The notes below the pieces were generated by a model. It was not told the DNA's origin, ran no database searches, and was given only the letters and a program-made list of their open reading frames with translations. A stretch of 42,955 nucleotides of DNA from the NCBI RefSeq assembly GCF_001194135.2, contig NC_068984.1:94384780-94427734 (forward strand), written 5' to 3'. Shown here in pieces: positions 1 to 41,636 of the stretch (positions are counted from its first letter, which is position 1; the number at the start of each line of letters is the position of its first letter). This stretch comes from Octopus bimaculoides (Eukaryota). Both the position numbers and the translations under genes were made by a program.

Positions 1-164
1 CTAATTGTTACACAAATTTTGGGTAAAACCTCCACTTTTACCCGCTCCCATTGATTGCACCTAGTATAGCACTAGTGTAGCAATAATTGGGTACCCTCCC
101 AGCAGTATACTGGATAGATACTATCCCTTAGTGGGTTGAACCCCCAACCCCTAACTCTCTCACG

Positions 165-165
<1 letters not shown>

Positions 166-222
<57 letters not shown>
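166..222. repeat. (AT)n followed by (AGAT)n microsatellite
   Basis: Directly visible tandem units. Confidence 0.95.
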
Positions 223-223
<1 letters not shown>

Positions 224-959
224 CTAATCGACCTTAACCACCACTACTATCTAACATTAACACCAACACAGCTACCATTAACATAAAAAACAGTGCAATT
301 ACTAATGTTACCAACCCACCCATAACAACAGCAACAAATGCATGAACAAGAAAAAGCAACTCCATCCAAAATACAAGACAATGATATGAAATAATGCAGT
401 ACTCTAGTGTATTTTAAAAGTTGAATGAAATATCTTTGACTTGAACCTAAACAACAATAATAGCACACAAGAACACTATGACCACCATCATCACCAACAA
501 CACCCCCACACTCATTAACACCAAAACCAATACAATTAAAACTCCCCAACATCACTACCAACTCACCAACTTTTGAATAATCAACTGGCAACAACAATAA
601 AAGTATCAGCACAATAGTAATGTCTGTAGCTACATATGTTGTTTGTCAATACAACAGAGTGTATATGTATGTGTGTGTGTGAGAAAGCATGGAGTTTTTA
701 TGGCTTAAGGCTTAAGTCTGAGATGCAAGAGGCGAAATACCCATGACCTGGTAACCCATCAGCTAACTGTAATCATACAGTACTTCCTTCCATCTCACCT
801 TTCACCCTTTCATCTTTCTGTCTCCAATTTTACGTAATAAGAAATAAGACAATTTTTTGCTCTCACAAAACAATTCTTTACTTGTGCTATTTTTTTTACA
901 AAATATTTATCGTTGATAACTGTTGAACACAACCACTGATGGATTTATCCAAAGTTAAG

Positions 960-1971
960 ATGTCTGAAAAGAAACAATCAAGTGGGACTGAAGGTAATTG
1001 TGCATAAAAGAATTGTAAAAGGATTATGCGGCATATTAAACTTGGTGTGGGAAAAAAATTATCCATACTGCTAAAACATAATATTAAGAACAATATGTGA
1101 TAACAGAGTGAAAATTAAATGCTCAAGAATCTACTCCATTAACTGCTCAAACATTATTTTATCACATAACTAATGTGGTGCTTAAATTGGAATGCCGTGT
1201 GTGTGGATCACGGATCACATTTGACATAATATGCAAAGTAATTAAAAACAAAGCCAAAAGTTTGCATGGCAATTTGCATAAAAGGGAAAGTGGAACTTCT
1301 AATGAAAACCCTTTCCTGACAAAATCTGGTTCAAAAGGTTCAAGAAAAGCTTAAATTTGTACAACATAAAAATGGCTGGTGAAGCTGCCATTGTTGATAT
1401 AGAGGCTGCTACTAATTATCCTGAGCATTGCTGAAGGAGGCAACATTAGGGAAACAATATAACGTACTTTTCTTGAAGTACATGAATGCTAGAACTGTTA
1501 TTTCTCATGAACAAAAATCAAAACCAAGGATTTACAACTTTAAAAATTGTAAAAGGATTTACAGCTTTAAAAACTGCCTGATGCTCTTGTATCACTCCAA
1601 AATTTCAAGGCCTTTCAAGAACTTTGCAAAGTTTAATCTACCTCTGAGTTGGCATTCAAATAAGGCATGAATAACTAAGAACCTTTTCAAAGAGTGATTT
1701 AGAAACATCTTTTGTTCAGCTGTAGTCAGGTAAGTGCCAGATATGATATTTTCAACAAAACATTGCTCCTTTTAGACAATACACCAATTCACCCAATGAG
1801 CTTTTTGATAATGTGAGAACAGAATATATCCTCAGGAATACAACTTCCTTGCTCCAGCCAATGGACCAAAGTGTGAAAGCTCACTTCCAGGCATACTATT
1901 TGAGAAGAACCTCCAAACAATTTATAAAGCAATCAACAGAGAAAATAAATGATGTAACTGAACTGCTAGTG
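960..1971 (+). mobile_element. Tigger/pogo-like (TIGD1-type) transposase relic, 5' part
   Basis: Manual translation gives WFKRFKKSLNLYNIKMAGEAAIVDIEAATNYPE (~1327-1425), WHSNKA*ITKNLFKE*F, LLLLDNTPIHP, NTTSLLQPMDQSVKAHFQAYYLRRT and DVTELL, all typical Tigger/pogo DDD motifs. The frame has many stops and frameshifts; the left boundary is approximate. Confidence 0.85.
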
Positions 1972-1996
1972 CACATTGTGCCCAGATTGGCTAATT
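1972..1996 (+). repeat. Left TIR of the RAG1-like element (CACATTGTGCCCAGATTGGCTAATT)
   Basis: Matches the reverse complement of 5481-5502 with a 2-nt indel and a few substitutions. The first 7 nt differ from CACAGTG at one position. Confidence 0.8.
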
Positions 1997-2561
1997 CAAG
2001 AAAAAAATCATATCCCATGTGGTTAAAAATGATTATCTGGTAGGGGCTTTGAAGGGTTCCTCATTTACTCCATTCCCCCCCCCCCTTCTTTTGAGGATTT
2101 GATTTGACTTGCACTTACATCACCCAGCAATGATTTTGTACTCTCTGAAAATTAATTTCCAAAACCAAAATTGAAATTCAGCACTTTGTTGTGTCCATTT
2201 GTCCAACTGCCCAACTTCCTGTTTCAGTTTCACTTTCTTTGTACAGTCTGTCATGTTGCTGATACAGCACTTTTTCCTCACTTGTTTGGTACTTCACTTT
2301 CATATTGGTCATTCTCTTAAAGCTGTTATCAATTGCTGTTGTGTGCCTGCATTCTGTTTGCTTGTTTTTGAAGTATGTGTGCCTCAACAGTGATACTGAA
2401 TCATTACAAGATATTTGGGCCAATTGCCATGGGTTGTTGCAGTTTCATCTGTTTGGGTTGTTCTTTTGACTGGTTTGCATTTGTTTTCTCTAATTTGAGC
2501 TCAGGGTGACAAAGCCAATTTTATGCTGGTGTATTTTCTTTAGGTAGAAAATCAATTCAAA

Positions 2562-4586
2562 ATGAAGTGGAATAACAAAGAAGCATTAGAACTATTTCTT
2601 GTTTATACCAAGCACTTGCCTAAAAACAAAAAAGAAGGGCAAGAAATGTGATGAAGCGGCAAACATGTTCATAGAGAATCTTCCAAAGCTACCCCCAGAC
2701 CATAGGTGCATCAGCATGAAATTCTTGAGAATGTTGGATTCAAAACCTGGTAACAGGAGTTCTCAAAATGATGTGTCTAAATGGAAGATTTTGGTTTTCT
2801 TTGAGCATGTTCAAGCATCAGATTAAACAAAGAAACCAAGAACCAGACCAAGTGTAACCCTTGGTGATGCACCTTGTTTGAAAAAAACAAGGTCGATTTT
2901 GAAAGATGTGATTTGTTGGGTAGAACAATTTACTGAGGAACAGAATGTAACAAAAAAAGTTGCTCTGCAAACAGTAGTCGATGAATGCAATTGGACTTGG
3001 CATTCCTCTGTTAAGTCAACAAAATGCTCAATTCCTGTTGACAATGCAGTAGCATTAATATATAATGTTAATCTTTCAATGCATCAATATCAAATGATTA
3101 GGACATTGTGTCTCCTGCATGGTGTGGTATTCCTGACCAGAAACGAAGTAGATTGCAAAAAAAAGAAGTTTCATACTACTATGTTATCATACTACTACAG
3201 TTATCAATTGAAATCATTGGCGACATAACTAAGTTAATCGATGAAACAGCTGCATCATTGATTAAATTGAGTGAAACTAAACCAAATCATGAAGAAGGCA
3301 GTTACCACTTAATAAGAAAGTTTGGTGTGGATAGATCAGGATCTCACCAGGAGTTGATCAACACTTCTTTTGCAACAGAAGAAACTGCATATCTTGATCC
3401 AACAAAGAGTAATTCTTTTGTGTTGTCCTGTAACTGTCTCCTTCAGTTGTGCTACAACGACACTGTTCTTTAGACAAACCCAGTGTCAAACAGCACCAGT
3501 TTTGCATGCCCTGTGTCACTTACCAGATGTGTTGAAGAATGAGATGTTCTTGCTGTTGAACTTGAACCATCTTTTGAAGTTATAAAGGATGTCTATCAGT
3601 CAAATATTCTTCTTGGTGACAAAACTATCACTGTACATTGCAAAACAGAGTGCTCAATAGTTGATGGTAAAATGGTCTCCCTACTTCAAGTGGGGCATTC
3701 TGTCATCTGTGTCATACATTGTGAGCTACTGCGAACAACATTGGAGTGAAATCTGAAGGTTATGGTATTACCAAGGACTATGCTTTTTGCAATACAGCAT
3801 GGGAGAAGCTGTCAGCTGGGGACATTTTCTATTTGAGTAGATAGACACAAGGACAATGTCATGAGAACATCATCAAAGCTGATCTTTTTTGTTTTTCTGT
3901 TCTTCACTTTAAGTTGCGATCATTGGATTTTGCACAGCAAATTCTCTACCACCTTGTTAGCAGTCAGAAGATCTGGAGTGAGACAGCAAACCTTAATGTG
4001 ATGTAATTTGTAGGTCGAGCCAAAAAATAATGCATTGATGATATCCATTCCAGTACTGGAATCTTAGTGGATTCACCATGTCATTCAGGGGCGGGGCACC
4101 AATACTGGTCCCCTGGCTGATTGGTTCTTAATGCAACAAAGAAGGTGTAAGTTGATGTGTTGAAGTCACTGGGCATAGAGCTGATGATGCACATGAAGAA
4201 CGCATTCCTTAACAAGAAGGGGCAACCTTGGGTGATGTTCATTCCATCTTTCCACTAAATGTGTGTGCATAGCTGGCAGCTCTTTGAGTTAATTGAGTTA
4301 ATCAATTGCTAAATGGAGTGAGAGTCCAGTGGAAAGTTGGAATAAACATGTAAGGTCATTTCCAAGTGGTCCTTCTGCAAGATGTTGCCAGCTTTCAATC
4401 AAGGATAACATCCATGATATCTTCAGAAGAATGTCCATCATGTCACATCCAGCAATTGCTTCAAAACATCCCAGCCCAAGTTGTTCTGTTTGTGGTGAAG
4501 TTGGTCACACAGTTCGTTCTTCAAAACATAAGAAGGTGTCTGCTTTGTCAGAAGAACAATCAAGAATCGAATCACTATATTGCTAA
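2562..4586 (+). pseudogene. RAG1-core-like DDE transposase pseudogene
   Basis: Segments in order: RPSVTLGDAPCLKKTRSILKDVICWVEQF (NBD-like); AVALIYNVNLSMHQYQMIR (cf. RAG1 LAIRVNTFLSCSQY); KFGVD (D1, 3330-3332); L*TNPVSNSTSFACPV (cf. Transib WxNPxPSSTxYCRP); SIVDGKM (D2, 3663-3665); AFCHLC (3701-3712); SVLH (3905); TNTGPLAD; PSFH*MCVH (4253, 4268); WSESPVESWNK (E, 4332-4334); CSVCGEVGH (4482-4508). There are several stops and frameshifts, and the start at ATG 2562 is tentative. Confidence 0.88.
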
Positions 4587-5480
4587 CTGGCCCATGTTAT
4601 GCATATTTATTGTTTGGCATTGCTGTTTCAATATTTGTTGTGAATAATAAGTGATCAGTTTTCACAATTTAGAGCAAATGATTCTGATTTTCTTTGTGAA
4701 TCATGGGGGGGGGGGGNNNNNNNNNNNNNNNNNNNNNNNNNNNNNNNNNNNNNNNNNNNNNNNNNNNNNNNNNNNNNNNNNNNNNNNNNNNNNNNNNNNN
4801 NNNNNNNNNNNNNNNNNNNNNNNNNNNNNNNNNNNNNNNNNNNNNNNNNNNNNNNNNNNNNNNNNNNNNNNNNNNNNNNNNNNNNNNNNNNNNNNNNNNN
4901 NNNNNNNNNNNNNNNNNNNNNNNNNNNNNNNNNNNNNNNNNNNNNNNNNNNNNNNNNNNNNNNNNNNNNNNNNNNNNNNNNNNNNNNNNNNNNNNNNNNN
5001 NNNNNNNNNNNNNNNNNNNNNNNNNNNNNNNNNNNNNNNNNNNNNNNNNNNNNNNNNNNNNNNNNNTTAATATGTCAAAATTTGTCATTTAAAAAAAAAA
5101 TTATCAAGTTTGAGGGGGTTTTACCAAAAATTTGGATATTTCTATCAAAAACTTAAATTTTTCATGCATCTCCAATTTTCTCAAATTTATGTTGGCCTAT
5201 GCACTCTAGGCTGTAGCTTGACTGAAAAACAATAAAAAATGCTCCTAAATAAGTTCAAACAGAGGTTTAAAATCTTTTTTGTAAAAGAAAATATGTTCAA
5301 TCTTATTGATACTAAAAAAAAAAAACCGTAAATTTTGTTAAATTGGCCCAACTTTAAAGAGCTATAAAAATTGAACCATACATTATTTTAAACTTAGGTT
5401 TTTTGTTTTATAATTTCCTGAGTTTAGAGAACCAGAAAATTTGCAGTTTAAACATCTGGGGGAAACTTCAAAAGATGATA

Positions 5481-5502
5481 AATTCCTACTCTGGGCAGTG
5501 TG
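5481..5502 (-). repeat. Right TIR of the RAG1-like element (reverse complement CACACTGCCCAGAGTAGGAATT)
   Basis: Inverted match to 1972-1996, followed directly by TAGAG at 5503-5507. Confidence 0.8.
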
Positions 5503-6160
5503 TAGAGTCTCACTGAGAATGTTTATCTAACAAAGAGTTGATGCTGTTAGAACAAGAACTAAGAATACAAATAAGAATATAGAAACTCCACCAACTTCAC
5601 TTAAATTGACAAAAAGAATATTGTTAAAGGGTTGGCATTTATAGACAAAGGTCTGCAAGTTTTTGATGATAACACCCCTTAATCATGAACATAACAAAAA
5701 TTACAATGAGCTCAGTTGCTACACTGAGCTGTACAAAGGGATGATACACTATAAACATCAAACAACTTTGGATAAGTTCTTCATACCTGAAGTAGACACT
5801 GATGATGATGATGATGAGACAGAAGACAGTGTCTCTCATCATCCCAGTAATGCTCATTCCACCACTACCCCTCTCGCAGTAGTCAATATATTTTGTGGTA
5901 AGAACACACCCTGTTACAATATTACAATTCTTATTTATTCCTTTATGTATTAGTTTTCAAATGTTCCTATGCATACATGTACTGTGTATGTTTAGAAATT
6001 ATTAATTTCATTCATAAAAGTGGTCATCTAGCCCCCCCCCCCCAAAAAAAAATTGTTAGAACACATCTCACTTAATACATGAAAATCAATGGGAAAAGTA
6101 ATTTCAGATTATAGTAAGATATTTAGGAACAAGTTACTTCCATAAAATGAGGAATAGCTG
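5503..6160 (+). mobile_element. Tigger/pogo-like relic, 3' part
   Basis: Reads (L)ESH*ECLSNKELMLLEQE, continuing DVTELL from before 1972, and later HQTTLDKFF, typical of the Tigger C-terminus. The right end is approximate. Confidence 0.8.
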
Positions 6161-6210
6161 TAGTTTCAGAGTTCATAATCATGAACATAAGGGAGTCTTT
6201 GGTAACACAT

Positions 6211-6436
6211 CTAAGTTACGGGGACGTAAACACAGACACACAAGCACACACACACACATATATATACATATATACGAAGGGCTTCTTCCAGTTTCCGTCT
6301 ACCAAATCCACTCACAAGGCGTTGGTTGGCCCGAGGCTATAGTAGAAGACACATGCCCAAAGTGCCACACACAGTGGGACTGAACCTGGAACCATGTGGT
6401 TGGTAAGCAAGCTACTTACGACACAGCCACTCCTGC
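6211..6436 (-). mobile_element. tRNA-derived SINE (octopus-type), head and core, partial tail
   Basis: The minus strand begins GCAGGAGTGGCTGTGTCG (A box) with a GGTTCAGTCCC B box. It is homologous to 32817-33244. Confidence 0.85.
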
Positions 6437-7220
6437 ACCTATTGTAATGAAAATCTTCATTTAATTTGGTAACAAATATATTCAAGGAAATGAACAATTT
6501 TCATACAAAAACTAAATAAATTAAAAACTAATTTCGTTACACTGCCTTAATGTAAGGTTAAATCTCTTTCTCATTGAGTACACTCTTCTTTTAATGATAT
6601 ATATCAAGAAAAAAAAAACAAATAAACAAAACTTAAAAACCACAAGTTTACAACACTTGTTACCACATTGTGCTTTTTTTGTTATGGATAATGATTCAAC
6701 TTCATGGACAAAAGAACCATATCAGGAGGAAAGCTGAAGAAGATATTTTGCTTTTGGCATGAGCTTGTAGATATTGTAAGAACATATGCTTTATCAGTGG
6801 ATGTTGTGTCAGCTGTGAAAAATATTCCATATAAAGTGTTGCAATACATTTTTGCACAGAAGAATACGCTATAACAATTCACACTGAAGAACCTTCTACA
6901 TCTGCTGTTTCTTTCTCAGTAAGAGATGTAGATGATTCTCTTGCAGTAGAAATAGCTCTCAAAAAAAAAAAAAAAGAAAAAACTTAGAAGAGATTACTGT
7001 TCTTCTTTCCCCCATTAGCCTGTTGTCCTTCAATGTTGAATAAACAGCCTGCCAAACACAAACAAAAAAAAATTGTGATTTTTCAACTGTTGATTTATAA
7101 TTTTTCCTCTAAATCTTTCATTTGCTTATTTGGATACACAAATATCAGGTTGATTATTTCAATTGTTCACATATCATATAGACTGAAATTTACCATGAGT
7201 TTTAATTAGATTCTTTTTCT

Positions 7221-7385
7221 TTTATTCTTTTACTTGTTTCAGTAATTTGACTGCGACCATGCTAGACCACCACCTTGAAGAGTTTTAATTGAATAAATCA
7301 AACCCAGGACTTATTTCTTAAACCTAGTACTTATTCTATCAGTCTCTTTTGCCAAACTGCTAAGTTACAGGGTCAAACACAAACA
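7221..7385 (-). mobile_element. SINE 3' tail fragment
   Basis: Homologous to the tail of the full copy (32817-32970), next to a CA/TA microsatellite and an N gap. Confidence 0.75.
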
Positions 7386-7629
7386 CACTCACACACAGAC
7401 ATATATATACATATATATATATNNNNNNNNNNNNNNNNNNNNNNNNNNNNNNNNNNNNNNNNNNNNNNNNNNNNNNNNNNNNNNNNNNNNNNNNNNNNNN
7501 NNNNNNNNNNNNNNNNNNNNNNNNNNNNNNNNNNNNNNNNNNNNNNNNNNNNNNNNNNNNNNNNNNNATATGTATGAAGTAAAAGCAGCTCTAGTGTAAT
7601 AAATATTATTAAATACATATACTTATGTA

Positions 7630-8285
7630 CAGGGTGCAGTGAATAAACTGTCATCTAAATTATACAAAAGTGAAAATAACACTGACATCTCATTTTAATA
7701 GATGTACTTACCAAAATTACATAAAAATATCTTGAAATACTAAAGAGTAAATTTATTCAATAAAATCACCATAGGATTCAATCATGGCCTCAAGATGACT
7801 TCAGAATCTCCTGCAACTCTTCTGGACAGTCTCCTTGTTTAAGCTGGTGAATGCTGCCATAATCCTTGCCTTCAGTTCAGTTTTGGTGTTACAAGGAGTT
7901 TTGTTGGTCTCTCATTCAACTGCGCTCCACACATAATAATCAAAGAGGTTGCAGTCTGAGGAATTAGGTGGTCAGATGTTTGGGGTAAGATGGTCGCAGA
8001 AATTTGTCTGAAAGCCATTACTGGGTTCTCCTACTTGTGTGGTATGGTACAGAGTTCTGTTGCTAGACATAGGGTCTTCCAGCAGCCACCCTCTTGACCC
8101 ACAACAGCACTACTTGATGTCGGCCTCTGTGTTGAGTTTGAGGCCATGTGGGAAGATGAATGAAGGCATAAAGTCACCATCACTAGTGATCACTCCAAAC
8201 ACCATGATGTTGACTGGATGTTTGATTCTTATCACTCTCAGTACATGTTTTGGGGACACAGCAAGCCAATGGTTGTTCCGTGTGT
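7630..8285 (-). mobile_element. Tc1/mariner transposon relic, probably DD37D (maT-like), 3' half plus terminus
   Basis: Minus-strand translation gives NNHWLAVSPKHVLRVIRIKHPVNIMVFGVITSDGDFMPSFIFPHGLKLNTEA, a decayed QQD-equivalent region, then TPNI*PPNSSDCNLFDYYVWSAVE. It ends at TA|CAGGGTG on the + strand. The DD37D spacing is estimated from a decayed copy. Confidence 0.8.
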
Positions 8286-11599: not shown

Positions 11600-14100
11600 A
11601 AAAACTCTCTTTCCAAGCATCCCTGTCATCTCAACATCTCCCCAGCCAAATTCTCGGCCCTTTAATCTCTCCGATGCTGCACTGACATCATTATAAAACC
11701 AGCCGACAAGGGTGGAGCCGTGGTGGTATGGTGTGCGGACCTCTACAAGGTCGAAGCTCTCCGCCAACTTCAAGACACCTCCTTCTACTGCCCTCTGCCC
11801 TATGACCCAATGCCCACCTACCAACAGACTGTGTCCTCCACTATCCATGACCTCATCTCCTCCCCCGTCTGCCCCCACCGCCTCCAACCTCATTGTCTGC
11901 ACCCCCACCATTTACTTCCTCCCCAAAATCCACAAACCTAACAACTCTGGCCGCCTCACTGAGCTTATCTCCAAATATCTTGACTGTATCCTTGCCCCCC
12001 CTAGTGGCTTCTCTCTCTTCTCAGATCCATGACATCAACCACGTGCTTCGTTTGTTCAACTCTTTCTCCTTCCCTCCTGGCCCCTCTAAACTTCTCTTCA
12101 CTATCGACATCCAGAGCCTTTACACAGTGATCCCTCACCACGAGGGGCTGTGTGCACTCAAACATTTCCTTGGCCTCCGACCCAACCTCCAGCCTGACAC
12201 CTCTACACTCGTTCATCTGGCCGAACTTGTCCTCTCACTTAATTGCTTCTTGTTCGCGGGCAATTTCTACCAGCAGCTCTCAAGAGTGGCCATGGGAATG
12301 AGAATGGGCCCCAACTATGCGAACCTATTCATTTGGCTATGTTGAGGCCCAAATATTCTCAAGTTTCACTGGTTCCACTCCCAAATTATATGGCCGTTAT
12401 ATTGATGACTGTATCGGTGCAACCTCACTCTCCCGCGAACATCTAGACTCCTTTCTCTCTTTTGTCAAATCGTTCCATCCTGCCCTCCACTTCTCCTGCA
12501 CTATCTCTGACACCTCTGTCTCCTTTCTTGACATTTCGGTCAGCATTAATCACTCCACTCTTACCACCTCCATCCACTACAAACACACAGACTCACACTC
12601 ATACCTCAACTTCTCCTCCTCCCACCCTAAACACACCAAGCTTTCCATCCCCTATTCCCAATTCCTCCATCTACGCAGGCTCTGTAGTGACGACCATGAC
12701 TTTGAGACTCAGTCTCAACTCATGGCTCACCATTTCATCCTAGTTGGATATCCCCCTCACCACTATCCACACTGCCCTTGCCAGAGCATGTCCCCGAACC
12801 CGCCCTGCCATCTCCCACCTCCCTTTTCCCCTCACCTACCACCCCACCATCCTACCTCTCCAATGCACCATTCTCTGAGCTTTCCAGCGTCTCCAGTCCA
12901 ACCCCTCCATTTCACACATCTTCCCTAACCGACCCCTCCCCTCCTTCAAACAAGCCCACAACCTATGAGACCTCTTAGTCCACAGCTTCTTCCCCAATCC
13001 AACCCAACCTCCCAACCTGCCTCGTTTCCCTGCTCTCACCCACAATGCCGCACTTGCCCATACCTTTCCAACACCACCCTCCTCACAGGCATCCATCATT
13101 GACCCTATCACATCACTGACTCCTTGACCTGCACTTCTACCAATATCATCTATTGCATCTCCTGTTCTCTCTGCCATTCTCTGTACATCAGACAAACGGG
13201 ACACCGCTTGGCTAACCAGTTCGTGGAACACCTTAGAGACATCCGCCTCGGCAATGACACCCCAGTCACCGGTCACTCTTTGCAACACCTGTCCGTGTTC
13301 GGATTGTCCTTGCACAAGGGCCATCTGGACTCCCGTTTGCACCATGAACAGGGATTAATCTTCTGTCTTCGCTCCTTTGCACCACATGGGCTCAACTCTC
13401 CTCCTTTTGCCTCTCTCCCCCTCCCTCCTACTTCCTCCCACCTATCTCTCCTCTCTTGCTCCAACTCCTACTTCTCTTCACACCTACCCCTACTCTCTTT
13501 CGCTCTTCTCTCATACTCACCTTCCCCTTCCTCGTCAGCCCTCCCTCATGAGCCCACTCCACCCCTACACATTCCTACCCCACCTTCCTCATCCCATCCC
13601 TTACACCCTCTCCTACATACCCTACCTCTAACCCCACCCACTGCCTACCCACATACCCCCACCCCCACCCGTGCATTCCCCACCTCCCAACATCACGCAC
13701 ACACCAGCACTGACCAATCCCCATCCCCACATCTTCACACCTACATATACACACACGCACACGTCAAGATCACCATCCCTCTTTCACACGCACATACATA
13801 CTCGCTCACACACGCGTGCACCTTCGTTTTGGGATCACTATTACTTTGTTATCTTCCCTTCTTCTTAGCTCTCCTGTATGACCCTTCTGTTCGGCATTCG
13901 CCATGATAGATCGCTAACCACTACACACATTTCTTTTCTCTGCTTGTTTCTCTCTTTGTTTCTTTCTGTGTTCCTTTCTGTTGAACAGCATAGGCTCGAA
14001 ACGTTAAAGACTTTTCCAATTCCCAAACGTTATACTAATATATCTGTGTGTTTTCTACACCACCTGTCTTTGTCCTTTGTTTTTCTTGTGAATTCTCCCT
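11600..14100 (+). mobile_element. Penelope-like retroelement (Neptune-type), 5'-truncated, RT plus GIY-YIG
   Basis: Motifs IIKPADKGGAVVVW, YFLPKIHKP, LFTIDIQSLYT, GMRMGPNYANLF, YGRYIDD, FLDI and SSSHPKH; a Cys linker PCSHPQCRTC; endonuclease NIIYCISCSLCHSLYIRQT. It is frameshifted and has a pyrimidine-rich 3' region. Confidence 0.88.
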
Positions 14101-16443: not shown

Positions 16444-17319
16444 ATGCAATGTCCTCCGTTTCGCTTATTGGATTTGCTTGAAATCAGCCGTGACCAGGAC
16501 CATCTAATTGAATGGCTGAAAACATATGGACTTTTAGCAGAAGCTCATGTCTGTGACTGTGGCCACAATTGTTCGTTTGTGAAATTTTCGTGACTTCAAG
16601 ATGGGTATAGTTGGAAGTGCACTGCTTGACAGTGGCGAAAACGCTTTTCCATTAGAAAAGGATCGTTTTTCCAAAATAGTAATTTATCTTTAAGAACAAT
16701 ACTGCTCTTTCTGTATTGGTGGTCCATTGATGAACCCTTGCAGAAAATTATGCATGAGCTAAAAATTGCGAATTGGTCCACTGTAGTGGATTGGGCCAAT
16801 TTCTGCCGAGATATTCTGGCACAACACCTAATTGATAATCCATTAATGATTGGCGGCCCTGATGTCGTGGTTGCCATTGATGAGTCTAAATTTATGCACC
16901 GAAAGTATCGGCGGGGTGCGCACTATGACGGCACTTGGGTGTTGGGTGGGATTCAATTGGACAATCCCACCAATTGCTTCTTATCTATATGCTCGGATAA
17001 TAGCCGGTCCATGGATTCCTTGGAATCCATTATCCGGCAACATGTCCGTCCAGGGAGCATCATTTTCACAGATGAATGGGCACGTTATCGTAATTTGCAG
17101 CAGCAAGGGTTCCTGCATTTAACGGTAAACCACTCAGTTTCATTTGTTGATGAAGCCACAGGTGTACACACAAATCATGTAGATGGAATGTGGGCGCATG
17201 CTAAGTGCAAATATCGGCAACTTTATGATACTTCAACCGAGTTGTTTTCCACGTATTTAATAGAATTCATGTGGCGGAAGAGGTACTCCACTAGACAATT
17301 TGAGCAATACACATTTTAA
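16444..17319 (+). pseudogene. Merlin DDE transposase, full length, two in-frame TGA stops
   Basis: MQCPPFRLLDL...CDCGH...[26 protein letters not shown]...[10 protein letters not shown]...WVLGGI...[11 protein letters not shown]...HLTVNHS...[12 protein letters not shown] 16444 is in frame with the 16738 ORF. Confidence 0.92.
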
Positions 17320-19271: not shown

Positions 19272-21990
19272 ATAGGGGGAATATTGTGAGTTTGATAGGT
19301 TTAGAGTATACTCAATGCACGCAAAACTCTTATATCCTTCGAAAACAAACTCTGGTGCCGAGCTAACCAACATAGTAATAACTCTAACAACTTATTTGAT
19401 ACAACCATGGGATCTTATGATTCCGCTCAGGCCACTGATTTAGTTGGATTATATATACTTCACCAACTGAGCTCACATTTCCCTAATATCCGCGGAGGTC
19501 TATATAGGGACGATGCCTTATTACTTACCAAGGCTATTAATAAATCTTATCTGGAAAGGACTAAAAAGGATCTACACAAATTCTTCTCTAATCTGAATCT
19601 ATCCATCACATTTGAAAACGCATATAAAATGGCTAACTTTCTAGACGTTACTCTAAACCTATCAAACTCACAATATTCCCCCTATCATAAACCTAACCAA
19701 TACCTAAAATACCTCAATGTTCACTCTAATCACCACAGATTTACTTTCGATAACATAGTCATGGGTATTTCAACCCGCATATCTGATCTATCCTCTTCCG
19801 AAGAAATCTTTAACAATCACGCTCCATACTACAATCAAGCTCTCGCCGCTAGTTGTTTCTCCCAACAAATAAAATACATCCATAACACCAGACTTAAACA
19901 ATTTATATCCCAAAGACATACCATTAATCACAACCGCAACCAACCACCCACATTTTCCAACAGACCCCACAAACACACTTATAACACTAGGGCTAAATCT
20001 AAGATATATAAAGCAATTAGCAACACCAAAAGTGTGGACAGCTGTTCTCCACCTAAATACTTAGATTACAACGTACACAGAACCCCCCAAGAAAGCGGTG
20101 GCCGCGCTATACTTTGGTACACCCCCACCCATTTTCACTTAACACTAGGAACTTAGCTAAATCTTTCTTCAAAATACTTGACTCTAACTTCCCCTGACAA
20201 CATAAATACCATTCTATATTCAACAGATCCACTTTGAAATTGTTGTATTCAACCACTCCTAACTTCGAATCTATTATAGCAACTTCTAATAAACATAAAC
20301 TTTCACTCTATTACCAAAACTCACACAACCATAACTATGCTAATACTAGCACTCAGCGCATGCATATACCCAACATAGACATTCATATACGTGCATCTAA
20401 CACTGACACTCGTACACTTGAACACGACCACAGTAGATCCCAGCCCACTAATATACTCGATAATAATAATACCATATCCTATAATAATAACAATGGAGGG
20501 ATTAATAACTATAACAATAATTCCATTGATCTAGATTCTTCTACATCCTCACTTAACATATCCTCCAACAATAATGCCTCATCCACCACAGAGACCAACC
20601 CTCAAGTCTCATCTACTTGTAACTGTCACTCCGGGACAATCTGCCCGCTACAAACACATTGCATAAGATATAACGTAATATATAAATGCACTGTAACGAA
20701 TCTGCTACATAACTCTACAGCTGCATACATAGGTTCAACTAAAAACTTCAAGCAACACTACGTAGCCCATTTGCACTCTTTTTGATATGACAAACACAGT
20801 AAATCTACAACACTAGCCAACCACATTCACCACCTCAAAAACATAAATAACCAGTATAATTTTAAATGGTCCATCCTGGATTCTGGAATTCCATACCAGG
20901 GCCAGTGCTCTAATTGCAAGCTTTGCTTAAAGGAGGCGTTCCATATTTTAAAATACAATTCTCCCACTCAATCGATATAACGAAGCACTTAGCACCTGCA
21001 ATCACCGTTTTTTCCATACATTTAAATTCTATCACAGACACAAATGCACAAATGACCACACAACTCCCTATAGGCAACCTATTCGACCTAGCAAACTGAT
21101 CCCCCTTCTACCATCTTTAGAATAGATTTACTTCATTTTAGATCCTATCACTACTAAATAATTTTTCCTAATTTACTTCCTTGCCACTAGCACCACCACC
21201 ACTTGCAAGCTCCCTATTGATAACCACAATCAACTCTAGGTAGCATCTGATCCCCCTTCTACCATCTTGAAATTAGGTTTAGCTCTATTTTTAGAACATA
21301 GAGCTACTAATTCTATTCTCTTCTATTTTCCTTTAATACTGTTTTTAGAATGTCACCTACACCCTCACCACTTATAGCCTGACAATATACACATATAAAT
21401 ACCTCTCCACATTACCTCCTCACATTCCTTCTTCCTTACTAAACTTATGCCTCCACCCCCTCATTCTTTCTTTACTTCCTATACTTATTGTCTCCGTCTT
21501 GTCGTCTTGTCGGAATAACTGACCATACAACTGCTCACTACTATTCCTCACTTGAATTACTTCTTTCTCCCCTTTCCTTCCTGTCTTAAGGCTTGATCTC
21601 TTTACCCTACACACATCTCTCACTTGATTTGGGCTATCCTTTGAGTAAACAACGCACAGTATACTCCAGACACGATATGACATATATCCACCTTTGCTAC
21701 TACAATTATCTCCGGAAAATACCCACAAGGATTATTTACATGGATGTTTACTACTGCATTGAAGCTACACTGTTTCTTCTTTCTTTTTTCAGCGCATCAC
21801 TCACTTCCTACTACAACTCTCCTCTTATAGATGTAATAATCCATTCCTCTACTATTACTGTCTCCAATGAAGGGATACATTGGATTTTCCCTGAAACAGC
21901 TGTAAGACTTTATCCATAAAATATATTTCTAACTTTGCCATTGTTCTCCTTATCCTTTTCTCTCTTTATACATACACACGCTAATACATG
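19272..21990 (+). mobile_element. Penelope-like retroelement (Naiad-like), 5'-truncated, RT plus GIY-YIG
   Basis: LNARKTLISF...FDTTMGSYDSAQATDLVGLYIL...GGLYRDDAL...NFLDVTL...YHKPN...HSNH, then CNCHSGTICPLQTHC..NVIYKC...YIGSTKNFKQHYVAHLHSF*YDKHSKSTTLANHI...KWSIL...CKLCLKE. The clade call is from remembered motifs. Confidence 0.85.
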
Positions 21991-30329: not shown

Positions 30330-31059
30330 AGTTTAATTACTATTTTATGACTCAAGTGTGGATGTGATATATCTCAACTTTGTAAAAGCCTTTGATAAAG
30401 TTGACCATGGTATGATATGTCACAAATTGCATGATCTCGGCATAGTTGGAAAACTTGGAGAGTGGCTACATGACTTTCTAAGAGATAGATGTGGCAGTGA
30501 TGGCCAATGGAGCCACCTCAAAGGAAACACCAATAGCAAGTGGTGTTCCACATGGCATTGTCTTAGGGCCACTGCTATTCATATTGGCCCTTTCAGATAT
30601 GCCCTCAGCCCCTCAGATAGCCACCCTCATTAGCTATACAGATGACACAAAAGTTTATCAGACAATTCAAAACCCAGGAAACATTGCAAATCTGCAACAG
30701 GAGTTGGATGCATTATACAGTTGGGCTGAGGACAACAATATGCTGTTTAATGTAAGAAAATTCCAAGTCCTGTGCTACCAGTACACAAAGCTGAATGACA
30801 TGCATACAGGATACACTGGCCCAAGAGGAATTGCAATCACTGAATCAAAATCAGTGCGTGACCTGGGCATTGACATGAGTAATGACATGAGGTTAGATGA
30901 TGGGGGTGGTGTTTCCAAAGGGCTGGCATGGGCAACCTCATCACCTCTGCCGATCAAACTCCCAACCCATGCTCTCCCATCGCGACACTGATACTGCAGA
31001 ACTGGGTTGGGTGTGAAAACCAACTTTAAAGTATAAATATAGATGTTTTTGAATCAGCA

Positions 31060-35869: not shown

Positions 35870-37550
35870 TTGTTACCTTTGTTTACCTACCAATGCAAGT
35901 GTTCGATCCAGTGACCTGTGATTACTATTGATTTAGTAAACAGAGTGGAAGACTCCTTTGAAAGCAAAGGAGTTGATGTGGAGCTCTTAGGTCCATAAGC
36001 TCGCTTCATAAGATGGTAAAACATTTTGCTGTCATTTGCATCAGCAGCAGCCTGAACATCACAAGCAAGATCCTCTCACTAAGTGTTCTGCATCTTCCTG
36101 AGAGATCGCTGCAGTAGTGATTTTACACTGCTATAGTGGGCAAGTGCTAGACTTCGCTGCACAATAGACAGTTCTCTGTGTAGCAATACATTGTGGGCAT
36201 GGCACTTTACCATCCATAGTCGCTGAACTTCAGCATCATTTTCATCAAACCAGTCTCTGTGTCTGGCAGTAGCATATCCCAGTATTTCAGCTGCACATTG
36301 AAGAACCTGGTCTTGAAAAATCTTCCCATGCTGCAGTATTTTCAATGCTGGACAAGCGAGTCTGAAGCTCTTTCCTAACCACAACATCATATACCTTGTG
36401 GACATTTAGATGGCAAGGAATGCTGACTGGTCCTCTTCTCTCTTTCACTCTAATCATCATTTGGAACTTTGCTTGCACCAGACTATGGTCCGTCCAGCAT
36501 TCCGATCCATGAAAGGACTTGACATTACAAATGTCATAGATGTCGCACTTGCAGATGATAACATAATTCAGCAAGTGCCAAACTTCAGACTTTGGATGCA
36601 TCCACATTGTTGTGTGATTACCTTTGTGCATAAAATGAGTGCTTGCGATGTAAAGTTCATGTTCTTCGCAAAGCTCCAGTAGCATGAGACCGTTGCTATT
36701 CATTTTCCCTACTCAAAAACGTCCTACAGATTTCCATGTTTGCCAGTCTGTTCCAACCCTGGCATTAAAATTCCCCAGTAGAATGACTTTATCAGAATTG
36801 GGGATTTTTCTAAGTATGGCTCTCAGCTGGGTATAAAAGATTGTTTTATCTTCATAACAGCTAGTCAAAGTAGGTGCATAGGCACTTATTAGAGTAGCAA
36901 ACTGCCTACCTTTCAAGCGCAACCGTAGAGTCATTATACATTCATTTATAGGAACAGGGAGCTCTTCCAGCTTCTTAAGGATATCAGATTGAACTGTTAA
37001 ACCAACACCAGCTTTTCTGCACTCCTCCTTCTGCCTTCCCTTCCAAAAAAAGGTGTATCCACCTCCTACTTCCTCAGGATGACCATCACCTGCTATACGA
37101 GTCTCTGAGAGTGCAGCTATATCAATGTTATAACGGTTCAGCTCACGACCAACAAGTGCAGTGCATCTTTCAGGCCTACAATCACTCTTGTTGCCCAACA
37201 GAGTGCGCACATTCCAACAAGAAATGTTTAAGTTCAGTCCAGATTTTATAAATAAAAGACTGTTTTTTGAGCACAGCGTGGACATCCATCATTCGCGCTA
37301 AACTGACCAGATACAGAAAGACAGGCAATTTTTGGTTCACCTTTTCTAAAACCTCCCCGGCCTCCGGGTGAGCAGTGCCCTCTCCAAATGGAGCTGCTCA
37401 GACACCCATGCAGCATCCAAATCCTACCGCTGTCTTGGGCAACATGAGGATGACTATATATCTAGCATGGGCCGCCTACGTGCAGGTCGCTGACTACATG
37501 CGTCCAACCTGTCAGGTCTGCATGCTTCACCACCTTCCCATTGCCGCTTC
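35870..37550 (-). mobile_element. RTE-clade LINE 5' part (APE endonuclease)
   Basis: LNISCWNVRTLL...RPERCTALVGRELNRYNIDIAALSETR...GYTFFWKG...LISAYAPT...ILLGNFNARVG, then NSNGLMLLELC...WMHP...SECWTDH and RHRDWFDENDAEV. Confidence 0.9.
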
Positions 37551-38049
37551 CGAATAAAAAAAATACTAAAGACATATAAATATATACTAAAAATGAAGAA
37601 AATATATATCAAAATAAGATATATATGTACTAAAAATAAGATATATATATCGGGGTAAAAAAAAATGCACATATCAAGCAGAGGTCGGCAATGCCTGTGC
37701 AGAGTTTCAGGTCCAATGAGGATTGCACAACACCTCATAGATCCTATCCACTTTTTTGACATTATCCAGAGACAAGCCAGAGCAAGATGTCTGGTGCCAA
37801 TATGAGTCGCAGGTTCAGAGATGTAGAAGTGCCGTGATCTCTAGCACAAACCAAAGATCCCCAAAATGTTCAATGCCATTCCCTGCATATCTGGTTTTAT
37901 ATCAGAGTGACCTTCTTCAACAGAAGCTGAAGGGTGCCTCACTCCCAATGGTCTTTCAGCACGCCGGACACCATCCTGGAATTTCTGCGTACCCGTGCTA
38001 TTGCTAGATAGCCATTGAGCCTGCACTAGGTCCATCCGAGCTTTCAGAT

Positions 38050-38080
<31 letters not shown>

Positions 38081-38243
38081 AACACACACTCACATATATA
38101 TATATATGCATATATGTATATATATACATATATATATATATATNNNNNNNNNNNNNNNNNNNNNNNNNNNNNNNNNNNNNNNNNNNNNNNNNNNNNNNNN
38201 NNNNNNNNNNNNNNNNNNNNNNNNNNNNNNNNNNNNNNNNNNN

Positions 38244-41200
38244 AGCTTGTCCGGATCGGGGAGACATGTTATACCAGAAAACTGCTTCCAGCGGCGAAAT
38301 GTGCCCTCTTTCCGCTATGGCCTTGATTGTCCAATGGTGTCTCTCTATGATTCCGTTACCGCTCAGCCTATATGCTACTCTGAACAAGCGACGCACTTTC
38401 CACCGGTCTAGCATATCCCTCAACACTTCCAAACGAAACGCCGACCCGATGTCCATTAGCAGTTCTTCTATGGGACCCTTCTCTAAAAATATCCCGTTCA
38501 AAATGTGCGCAATCTCGTCAGCAATGCCCATCTTAACTCCTTCCAAATGGCTATCCGGCCTGCAGTTGACCATGGAGAGATACATTCCCTGATGGCAGTG
38601 CGTCACATCCATGGCTAGTCTCTCCCAGTTGTGCTCCACTGAAAGGTTTCCTTGCTCATGCCCACATGGAGTAGGGTCAATGGACTGGAACCTTTCACAG
38701 CTCCCGACCACTTTCAGGATGCTTCTCCTAGTGACGTCAGCATCAATCAACTTCGCGAGATACAGAGTCCTATCCACCCCCAAGTGATGCATAGCATGTA
38801 GTCTCTTNNNNNNNNNNNNNNNNNNNNNNNNNNNNNNNNNNNNNNNNNNNNNNNNNNNNNNNNNNNNNNNNNNNNNNNNNNNNNNNNNNNNNNNNNNNNN
38901 NNNNNNNNNNNNNNNNNNNNNNNNNNNNNNNNNNNNNNNNNNNNCCGCGGCACCTTTTGTCTGAACTCTCCTCTCACTGGTGATCACCGATCCTACCCAG
39001 GCGAGCACAGTGGCCAAATCCGTCTGGATTTCGATTGAGCGCAGCCCCCATTTCAGGGGTAGTTCACCCCATTCAGCACTGCGTCTAACTTGGCGACATT
39101 GATGTGGTTAAAGTCGTCTGCTTTCCGAAGCCAGGCCAAGTCCTCCACCTCAGCACCTTCGATCTCCAACACAACCCCTATCACTATACTGCTAGCATCA
39201 CACCAAACGGTCCCACATTCCGTCTTGGGCACATACCAGTTCCCCTGACCGGGTCTTCCGCTCTCGTCTTCTCTAGGATTTCCCGCATCATTGCCACCGT
39301 CCCCTCTCCCATCTTGTCAATCCAACTCTCCCCCTCTGCTTGTCTCTTGGCATGCTGTGCACAGCCATCCAGCGATCGGGTAGTGACCTACCAACTTCTC
39401 ACACACCGAGAACAGCTCTCTCCTGCTGACACTGGAACTCAGCTTTGGGATTTTATTTCCTCTCCAGAACACCAACTCAACTGATCTATCTCTTCATAGC
39501 TTCAGCCCCAGTGCAGCTTCCCCCGCCATCGACTCCAGTGGCTTCGCAATCAGCCCGAACTTCTCCAGATGTCTCACTACCTCAGTGGCTGGCACTACAG
39601 TCTCGTCCACCAAAATGTCGTCTATGTAAGAACTGGTGGCCTTTCTTATCTTGTCCTCTTTCCCTAGGATGGACTTGAGCACCATCACCATGATCTTCGG
39701 AGCAGAATTCAGTCTGAAACCCAGCCTGGTTAAACAGTACATCCGGGCCTTGTACCGCACCAGCTGATATCGCCACAGTTTGTCACTCACATGGAGCTGC
39801 AAATATGCCGACTTCAAGTCGACATTCATCACTGCCTTGGTCGACTGTCTCCACACACGTAACGTCTCGCCTCCCGTGTGGAACGATATATGGTCATTCA
39901 GTTCTCTAAAGTCCAGCACCGGTCTGACTTTTCCCTTCGTCGACTGCATCACCGTCATCAGAGGTAGTACTCCGCTCACCACCTCCTCCTTCCACGGGAT
40001 AAGGACTCCTTCCTTGATCCATCTCTCTACCTCGTCTTTGAACTTGACCCTGGCGTGACCTTTCAGGGTACACTGGTAGCACCTCACCCTGTTCTTCAGC
40101 ATTGGGAACTCGTCTTTCCCTTGCCACTCTATCATCCACCGCCGACCATTGAACACCACAAGAAAATCCTTGTCCTCAACGGTGCAAGCAGTGCAGTCCC
40201 TCATGGAGCCCTGCTCTCTCTGGCGAACCTGACTCATAGCACACAACGCTCCCATGCTTCTGAACGTGACCTCATCTCCTCCAATCCTAACACCACCGAG
40301 GCAGTTGATGGCATCCATTCCCATCACCACATCAATCCCGTCTATCACATGTTCGATCACAATTACCTGCAGCCTTAGCATCGCGCCTCACACCGCTATC
40401 TGTACATTGCTGCTGCCCTTGCATCGGATTTCACCACCGTTGACCGCCTGGACGCTACTTGCCCCATTCCATTTCTTCGTCACCCTTGGAGTCATGAGGG
40501 TGGTCGTGCAACCCGTATCCACAAGGGCCTTGAATGTCTTCCCCTCGGCCTCGACATTAATTATGGGCAGCATCTCCACAAGTGCCTCTACTTTGCGGGG
40601 AAAGTTCAAGAGGCAGCAACTTCCCCACGGTCGTTTCCCTGGTCGCAATCACGGGCGATGTGCCCTGTCTGCCTGCATCGATAGCAGACGGGCCCTGGTT
40701 GCATACACTTCCTTGCCATGTGCGACCCCTGACATTTAAAACACCGGCCTGAGAATGGCCGCTGTTGCTGCATGGTAAGCTTCTTTGTGTCTTTCTCCGG
40801 CCGTCATCCGTAATTATGCGCCTCCGTTACCGCCTTCCGTCCAGTGTTTCATGTCAACATGCGAGCTTGAGCTACAAGTTCGCTCAGCGCCATCTTTTTG
40901 CCCCCGGAAAATTGTTGCAGTCGAATCCTCACGTCGTCAGGGAACCCACTTACGAACTGCAGTCGCGTTGCTCTGTCCAGGCCTTCTCCCGTAAACCCAG
41001 TCAGCGTGGTCAGCCTATGCACCTTCGTCGCGTATTCATCCACTTGCTCTCCCATCCATCTAATCGTTCCCAGCTTAACAAAGGCTCTATACTCACACTC
41101 AGTGTAAGCCTCTCTCAGACGTCGCTCAATCTTCTCCTTGCTCAGTCGTTCTTCTTCGTCCATCTTGAGATACAGAGTTAACGTGCTCCCTTCCAAATAT

Positions 41201-41636
41201 AGTGCCATAAGGCTCTCCACGTCGCTAATGCCTTGCAATCTCACCACAAGCCTGATTTTACGCATCCAGGCCACTACATCACCATTAAAGGGCCTGATAA
41301 CGTTGCTGGCGATCCTAATTTTAGCTGCCATCGTGGTGATGTCTTATGTGGAGCGTCAAAATAGCTTGTAGTGAATGCGGGAGATTAGAAGTAAGACACC
41401 TACTTTCTCTTCGCTGGCGCAGAAATGTCGGGTGGTAACGCATCCTTCCAGAAACGCTAAAAATAGCAGCTGCTTTCCCTCACCTTGACGAAGCAGATAC
41501 GTCCTGCACTCACGGCTCCCCCGACCGAAAAGGGCGCAATCTTCCTCGACCAGTGTGCACGTCACTTGTGCGCCCTTCCTCTTCCGGTCAGCTCCCCAGT
41601 TCCAGTCAGTTCCCCAGCCACTGACGTCATCCCATA
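38244..41636 (-). mobile_element. Ty3/Gypsy LTR retrotransposon, decayed, 3' LTR missing
   Basis: Gag at 41331-40849; CCHC knuckle CYRCRQTGHIARDC; protease ALVDTGC; RT RPVLDFRELN, DLKSAYLQ and YIDD (39628-39617); integrase GNGIIERHH. Confidence 0.92.
41367..41636 (-). repeat. Probable 5' LTR of the Gypsy element
   Basis: GC-rich block upstream of gag, bounded on the + strand by TGTAG at 41367 and CCCATA at 41636 (a decayed TG...CA). No canonical PBS was recognised. Confidence 0.55.

Follow-up and report, generated by a model that had tools for sequence, protein, structure and literature searches.

Transib transposons have been divided into two subgroups. Subgroup I is defined by asymmetric terminal inverted repeats (TIRs), an alpha11-alpha12 segment, a CTT1 tail and a GRP-type nonamer-binding domain (NBD), and its members have been called intermediates (Tao et al. 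2022, PMC9435367). Asymmetric TIRs, a CCGHC tail and a GRP NBD are DNA-recognition features already known in Transibs (Martin et al. 2023, PMC10462144). In comparisons with RAG1 and the RAG1-like (RAG1L) proteins, Transibs typically show less than 22% identity and are missing the RAG1 N-terminal region (Martin et al. 2020, PMC7204232). For the Transib TIR, a 38-bp consensus has been given that consists of CACAATG, 23 nt and AAAAAAATC (Kapitonov & Jurka 2005). The stretch of DNA analysed here, 42,955 nucleotides of contig NC_068984.1 (positions 94,384,780 to 94,427,734) and referred to as the window, harbours a decayed transposon at positions 1972-5502. We put at about 0.88 the probability that it is a single full-length, inactivated copy of an autonomous one-gene Transib, belonging to Subgroup I by its features and inserted in a Tigger/pogo element. 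The original prediction, made from the DNA letters, was that the element could be an undescribed single-gene intermediate lineage; this is not new as a kind, since Subgroup I of Tao et al. has these features, and the accompanying caveat, that the element may already be listed under some generic Transib name, is the more fitting reading. Transibs of this type have been known since 2022, and the new part is a member in an octopod host.

The element is laid out as follows, in window coordinates.

1967-1971, unstranded: left copy of the target site duplication (TSD), TAGTG, differing from the right copy by one substitution
1972-2009, + strand: 5' TIR, resembling a recombination signal sequence (RSS) of the 23 type; heptamer CACATTG (1972-1978), 22-nt spacer (1979-2000) and nonamer AAAAAAATC (2001-2009)
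2010-2561, + strand: 5' non-coding region, without an open reading frame (ORF)
2562-4586, + strand: decayed transposase ORF, with an ATG at 2562 and the stop codon TAA at 4584-4586
4587-4716, + strand: 3' non-coding region left of the gap, with a G10 run at its end
4717-5066, unstranded: assembly gap (N, length estimated), within the 3' non-coding region and outside the ORF
5067-5475, + strand: 3' non-coding and subterminal region right of the gap, with subterminal homology to relatives
5476-5502, - strand: 3' TIR, resembling an RSS of the 12 type; heptamer CACACTG (5502-5496) and, in the - strand reading, an 11-nt spacer (5495-5485) and the nonamer-like AATTTATCA (5484-5476)
5503-5507, unstranded: right copy of the TSD, TAGAG

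The left end, at 1972, reads CACATTGTGCCCAG, with one mismatch to the family terminal consensus CACAGTGTGCCCAG, and is the sole site in the window that matches this consensus so closely. The right end, at 5502, closes on the + strand with CTGGGCAGTGTG; its reverse complement, CACAC--TGCCCAG, has 2 nt deleted in or beside the heptamer, and the spacer measures 11 nt as against 13 nt in intact relatives. When the window was searched without gaps for the 14-nt terminal motif, the left end alone was convincing, matches with three mismatches occurring at chance level (4 observed, 2.4 expected). The true TIRs, being short and interrupted by an indel, were not ranked in a generic search for inverted repeats; a scan for CAC...GTG plus a TSD did recover the TIRs of relatives. 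The 5' end of the window copy (CACATTG, 22 nt and the nonamer) agrees in essence with the 38-bp insect Transib consensus, and it aligns with the 5' ends of four relatives (L007, L002, L005 and L008). The TSD copies agree at four of five positions. Both ends of the predicted single-gene transposon of RAG1/Transib type, with its CAC-initiated TIRs and 5-bp TSD, were confirmed to the base.

Past the 5' TIR, no DNA homology to relatives was found in 2010-2561; the 5' non-coding region of intact relatives measures 0.8-1.1 kb. Self-BLAST of the window gave no second copy of the element, three-frame translation of the element gave no second ORF, and an Rfam scan of window positions 1-8000 returned nothing. 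Two homopolymer runs were observed, C11 at 2076-2087 in the 5' non-coding region and G10 at 4706-4716 adjoining the gap, and the latter may be the reason for the break in the assembly.

The gap begins 130 nt past the stop codon. The relic C-terminus (...RIESLYC*) aligns to the intact C-terminus of homologues (...RIESLYF*), which places the gap outside the coding region. To its right, segments at about 5350-5405 and about 5462-5493 have matches in the relatives L003/L004, L005 and L006, in 3' subterminal DNA at an equal distance from the end. The left end is of the family 5' type and the right end of the family 3' type, in the orientation that the ORF requires. The two outer flanks are neighbouring pieces of a single Tigger/pogo relic, and the left flank gives a DDE_1 match (PF03184, 24.9 bits). 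When 1972-5507 is removed, they read ...DVTELLV/SH*ECLSNKELMLLEQE... (the slash marking the junction) in a continuous frame, and in this joined form they can be aligned over the junction, with no gap, to proteins named 'tigger transposable element-derived protein 1-like' (ADVEELLESHCEDLSTEDL; EDVEELLESHAEELTNEEL). Translated, the right TSD copy (TAGAG) would give the L-E of the conserved ELLESH motif. Since TAGAG restores this motif, it should be the original target, the left copy having later mutated to TAGTG. Taken together, the types of the ends, the 3' subterminal homology and the rejoining of the Tigger flanks indicate that both sides of the gap belong to one insertion. A chimera of the assembly, in which the TIR and ORF of one copy and the 3' end of another were joined over the N gap, is very improbable. 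In its favour are the estimated length of the gap, the lack of read evidence and the run of G next to the gap, but such a chimera leaves unexplained why neighbouring parts of one Tigger relic rejoin in frame minus exactly one 5-bp copy, and why a 5'-type and a 3'-type end stand in the required orientation. Moreover, the 3' non-coding part of about 0.9 kb fits that of the intact relatives L002 and L008 (1.0-1.1 kb).

The decayed Tigger/pogo relic that hosts the insertion extends over about 1250-1971 and from 5503 to about 5830, and the C-terminal region of Tigger (...QTTLDKFF...) lies in its right flank. In a comparison with Tigger proteins by eye, the relic seems to be missing about 90 amino acids between the end of DDE_1 and ELLESH.

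The transposase ORF is heavily decayed. Seven pieces were stitched into a conceptual protein of 666 amino acids, with nine in-frame stops and at least six frame changes. Residues 1-714 of an intact relative, P0001 (715 amino acids), align by tblastn to 2562-4580 at 50-77% identity, in five pieces with frame switching between them; the alignment also shows that the ORF of the window copy has a deletion of about 38 amino acids, located after the GGNTNTG motif and before the second zinc half-site. One frameshift sits at a 17-nt tandem duplication (16/17 nt) at about 3172-3204, CATACTACTATGTTAT / CATACTACTACAGTTAT, and deleting 17 nt restores the frame (KKKKF-ILLQLSIE...). The motifs that had been predicted to run in RAG1-core order were all found, in that order.

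2839-2847, + strand: NBD-like RTRP, where intact relatives have GRP
3070-3102, + strand: NLSMHQYQ
3330-3332, + strand: codon of D1
3663-3665, + strand: codon of D2
3701-3712, + strand: CHLC (CxxC)
between CHLC and H*MCVH in the motif order: VLHFKLR (LH motif)
4253-4270, + strand: H*MCVH (HxxxxH)
E codon at 4332-4334, + strand: WSESPVESWNK
4482-4529, + strand: C-terminal knuckle

The D, D and E codons (3330, 3663 and 4332) all survive in the window copy.

Compared with a large protein collection, the stitched protein has 44 homologues, the best with an E value of 1.9e-247, 55% identity and 100% coverage. Many of them are intact, intronless single ORFs of 700-730 amino acids on genomic contigs of up to 1.2 Mb. 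A profile (A1) was built from an alignment of 22 full-length family members, and in 22 of 22 the DDE triad (D253, D367 and E631, P0001 numbering) and the zinc ligands (C382, C385, H604 and H609) are invariant. This profile matches HzTransib, BbRAG1L and RAG1. When A1 was searched exhaustively, 4191 representative proteins matched at E<=1e-3 and 513 at E<=1e-30, which makes the family of the window copy one of the branches of a large superfamily. The P0013 and P0037 clusters each contain at least six full-length copies at 90% identity or more, those of P0037 lying on different Mb-scale contigs; such near-identical copies point to recent activity in some eukaryotes. The DNA of intact relatives was taken from ENA and Logan, and four of them carry perfect 14-nt termini, CAC(A/T)GTGTGCCCA(G/A), at both ends together with perfect 5-bp TSDs.

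L002, 3031-7147: TSD CATCT; 4117 bp, with an intact ORF of 715 amino acids (P0012)
L005, 3518-8524: TSD CATTT
L007, 3127-7451: TSD CGATG
L008, 2018-5973: TSD TAATG; 3956 bp

Judging by these four and by the near-identical full-length copies, apparently intact and recently active copies exist in several marine eukaryote genomes. When five 5' ends and six 3' ends, those of the window copy among them, were aligned with MAFFT, the stretch from the terminal block to the conserved GGAAWWWAT block was 9 nt longer in the 5' ends (5/5) than in the 3' ends (6/6), and the spacer between heptamer and nonamer measures 22 nt in intact 5' ends and 13 nt in intact 3' ends. In the intact elements L002 and L008 no second gene was found, the ORFs besides that of the transposase being at most 113 amino acids long. 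Pfam searches with six homologues gave no match to RING or zf-RAG1, and just about 95 residues precede the GRP motif. The Pfam RAG1 family (PF12940) scores 24.8 bits on P0012 and 23.5 bits on P0007, both under the gathering cut-off of 25 bits, and PF26100 ('RAG1_RNase_H') has a weak precomputed match on several homologues.

Three lines of comparison bear on the placement of the family. First, profile A1 scores 198.7 bits against MleTransib_2823, in one stretch over profile positions 87-614 of what is an incomplete gene model, and 157.7 bits (E 3.6e-45) against HzTransib; against BbRAG1L it scores 54.4 bits (E 6e-14) and against vertebrate RAG1 at most 54 bits (about 1e-13). Over the 322 columns of the core alignment P0001 is 26-31% identical to Transibs, 20.6% to BbRAG1L and 19.0% to mouse RAG1. 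Second, a neighbour-joining tree, which is a crude distance method, was calculated from these columns with RAG1 and BbRAG1L as the root, 200 bootstraps and one reference sequence of Tao et al. The family of the window copy forms a clade at 100%, with the window copy, P0001 and P0002 together at 90%, and the sequences closest to the window copy are all Transibs. Third, the AlphaFold2 model of P0001 (pLDDT 80.1, pTM 0.67) had 49 significant Foldseek matches in the PDB, and 49 of 49 are HzTransib, RAG1 or BbRAG1L. The top match is HzTransib 6pqx (E 1e-20, TM 0.79, 21% identity, 535 columns). The RAG1 matches (E 4e-19, TM 0.66-0.74, 13-16% identity) come close to it in quality, extend over 590-670 columns and so cover more of the model. 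The predicted structure hence matches both RAG1 and HzTransib, and the latter best.

That the element is of the RAGL type, or stems from a lineage nearer to RAG1 than to Transib, is a strong form of the intermediate idea that seems largely refuted already, and we regard it as highly unlikely. It could draw on the RAG1-core order of the motifs, on an alpha11-alpha12 segment and a CCGH-type tail common to the family and BbRAG1L, on the PF12940 score of P0012 just below the cut-off and on the longer Foldseek alignments to RAG1 than to HzTransib. However, the profile gives about 54 bits to RAG1 and RAG1L as against 158-199 bits to Transibs, core identity is 19-22% as against 26-31%, the intact L002 and L008 are without a second gene, and Pfam shows no RING/ZDD N-terminal region. 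The lack of a RAG2-like gene and of the RAG1 N-terminal region, together with the higher scores and identities to Transibs, identifies the element as a Transib and not as a RAGL transposon. The CMC/Chapaev and MULE groups, the latter in view of the ESxN motif, were considered and rejected: the TSD is 5 bp long, the D-D-E spacing and the CxxC/HxxxxH arrangement are RAG1/Transib-like, and all structural matches are to RAG1 or Transib.

Within the Transibs, the family stands out by features that it shares with RAG1 or RAG1L. The alpha11-alpha12 segment, about 45 residues between the CxxC and LH motifs and the region that contacts RAG2, is present in the core alignment in the window family, MleTransib, BbRAG1L and RAG1, and is missing from HzTransib, its relatives and P0170-type proteins. 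The C-terminal knuckle Cx2Cx3GHx4C is perfect in P0024 and P0045, and some members have no match to it. In P0001, P0002, P0005, P0012, P0047 and the window copy it takes the form Cx2Cx3GHx4S-x(1-2)-H, in which Ser stands in place of the fourth Cys and is followed, 2-3 residues on, by a conserved His. The GRP motif lies about 95 residues from the N-terminus, with helices after it, and the profile aligns this motif weakly (i-E 5) to the GGRPR of the RAG1 NBD. The prediction that the element is more RAG1-like than a typical Transib was therefore borne out in part: the alpha11-alpha12 segment, the Cx2Cx3GH knuckle and the 12/23-like ends are not in HzTransib, while profile scores and identities place the family with the Transibs and well away from RAG1 and RAG1L. 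Upstream of GRP, residues 1-90 of P0001 are predicted to form a four-helix module (pLDDT about 88-90). This module also occurs in long HzTransib-like proteins, profile positions 26-100 aligning to P0170-P0187, and it is not in the crystallised HzTransib chain.

The GRP NBD-like region, the alpha11-alpha12 segment, the Cx2Cx3GH knuckle and the asymmetric ends have been kept by the window family and are lost or changed in HzTransib-type (Subgroup II) elements, and on this basis the family fits Subgroup I. Several points weigh against such a reading or qualify it. The placement in Subgroup I fits by sequence features only. In the tree the HzTransib-like sequences, a 100% clade, are sister to the window family at 54%, and the Mle-type clade splits off earlier than this pair. 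The knuckle of the window branch is a variant that could represent a CCHH form of the CTT1/CTT* zinc knuckle. As to the window copy itself, its GRP motif is changed to TRP, and the stitched 666-amino-acid protein has by itself no match in Pfam or the PDB, so that the family assignments come wholly from the profile of intact relatives. Its length of 3531 bp is an estimate, since the gap, which hides some of the 3' non-coding DNA, is of estimated length; intact relatives are 3956-5007 bp long. Finally, hairpin formation and the pairing of ends in the mechanism proposed below are inferred from the biochemistry of HzTransib and RAG.

In view of the tree, it is possible, if unlikely, that the family is an early-branching member or a sister of the HzTransib type (Subgroup II) that has kept ancestral features, and that it does not belong to Subgroup I. 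This reading could draw on the sister grouping with the well-supported HzTransib-like clade, on HzTransib being the best structural match and on the 5' TIR (heptamer, 22-nt spacer and AAAAAAATC), which follows the insect Transib consensus. Yet this grouping reaches just 54% in a crude method, the profile scores 199 bits against the ctenophore MleTransib_2823, despite its incomplete gene model, and 158 against HzTransib, and the four Subgroup I features of Tao et al. are all present, the knuckle as a Ser variant in the window branch. A related idea, which we put forward only as a doubtful one, is that of a deep, undescribed Transib lineage between Subgroups I and II, sister to the HzTransib type, in which the GRP NBD and the alpha11-alpha12 segment are retained together with a CCH(S..H) variant of the CTT1 knuckle and 13/22 RSS-like ends. 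If it were true, such a lineage would offer a single-protein model for the RAG2-independent reading of 12/23-type signals and would inform the order in which features were lost in Subgroup II.

The reading as a Subgroup I Transib can be set against the described systems one by one. Like the Subgroup I Transibs, the element has a single gene, a 5-bp TSD and CAC ends of unequal length, and its transposase combines a GRP NBD-like region, alpha11-alpha12 and a C-terminal Cx2Cx3GH knuckle. MleTransib_2823 of Mnemiopsis has the top profile score among the four named reference proteins compared, but core identity to it is about 28%, and in the tree the window family is a clade of its own, apart from the Mle-type clade. 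Further differences are the Ser in the place of the fourth zinc ligand in the window branch, with a His 2-3 residues on, and the surroundings of the ZnC2 cysteines, which read GDSGAFCHxC in the window family instead of GLGGAYCxxC. The host is also different, a cephalopod as opposed to the Subgroup I hosts in the supplements of Tao et al. (PMC9435367), in which Octopus, Cephalopod, Mollusca, Euprymna and Sepia are not mentioned.

With HzTransib (6pqn, 6pqx) the family has in common the fold, the DDE and Cys2-His2 sites, the 5-bp TSD and the CAC heptamer. HzTransib has no counterpart to about 47 residues that separate ZnC2 from the LH motif in the window family (the alpha11-alpha12 segment) and no CCHC-type tail, and its crystallised chain of 497 amino acids aligns to nothing in the first 160 or so profile positions. 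BbRAG1L of the amphioxus ProtoRAG and the protostome RAGL elements (Martin et al. 2020, PMC7204232) resemble the family in the RNase-H-fold DDE core, alpha11-alpha12, the CTT* motif Cx2Cx3GHx4C, the 5-bp TSD and a heptamer-like TIR. In contrast to them, the family has no RAG2L partner gene and no RING/ZDD N-terminal region, and BbRAG1L is separated from it by a core identity of 20-22% and a profile score of 54 bits. Vertebrate RAG1 shares the order of the core motifs, a GRP at the NBD position and the 12/23-like asymmetry of the DNA signals. It differs by a core identity of 18-19%, by an acidic tail instead of a knuckle tail and by being a domesticated gene, whereas the family consists of mobile elements without RAG2.

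When active, the element may have worked as follows. A transposase of about 710 amino acids would have bound two unequal ends, each made up of a CACAGTG heptamer, a spacer (22 nt at the 5' end, 13 nt at the 3' end) and an A/T-rich nonamer-like block. Cleavage would have proceeded by nick and hairpin in a DDE active site with an RNase-H fold, stabilised by the Cys2-His2 zinc site, and the element would then have been pasted elsewhere with duplication of 5 bp of target. This duplication is the step of the mechanism that is directly seen in the window. The window copy itself is unable to make transposase and has a damaged 3' heptamer, and it is a fossil.

For the octopus locus the element is of little consequence, being one more dead transposon nested in another. 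For the origin of RAG the lineage is of some value, as evidence that lophotrochozoan (cephalopod) genomes contain Transibs with a GRP NBD, a segment for RAG2 contact, 12/23-like ends and a CTT*-type knuckle. What interest is left attaches above all to the intact relatives, which could serve in experiments, and to where the clade stands between the two subgroups of Tao et al. A biochemical analysis of additional Transib transposases has been called for (Martin et al. 2023, PMC10462144), and a mollusc-wide survey reported just one Transib with an uninterrupted ORF of more than 300 amino acids (PMC10294476). Among the papers of the library searched, none was found to describe Transibs from cephalopods.

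The remainder of the window is rich in repeats and contains eight N gaps. An apparently open ISXO2-like (IS1595-type) transposase ORF of 193 amino acids lies at 16738-17319 on the + strand (PF12762, 71 bits). Its best named matches are proteins of Octopus bimaculoides, at 86-91% identity, which points to an octopod host and bears out the cephalopod origin that had been predicted. Retrotransposon fragments are represented by an RVT_1 match at 30491-30991 (+ strand, 38.8 bits) and by an APE-type endonuclease (Exo_endo_phos) at 36713-37285 (- strand, 34.5 bits). On the - strand at 38004-41331, interrupted by N gaps, there are ORFs that by eye resemble the pol, integrase and gag of BEL/Pao- or Gypsy-type long terminal repeat elements; the two that were scanned had no Pfam match at E<=0.001. 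Two further ORF regions on the + strand, 11893-13906 and 19407-20785, have no Pfam match and show reverse transcriptase-like and GIY-YIG-like motifs (NIIYCISCSLC..YIRQTG and NVIYKCTV..AAYIGSTK), which suggest candidate Penelope-like elements. The region from 12 to 14 kb is GC-rich (about 51%), with a strong skew of C over G.

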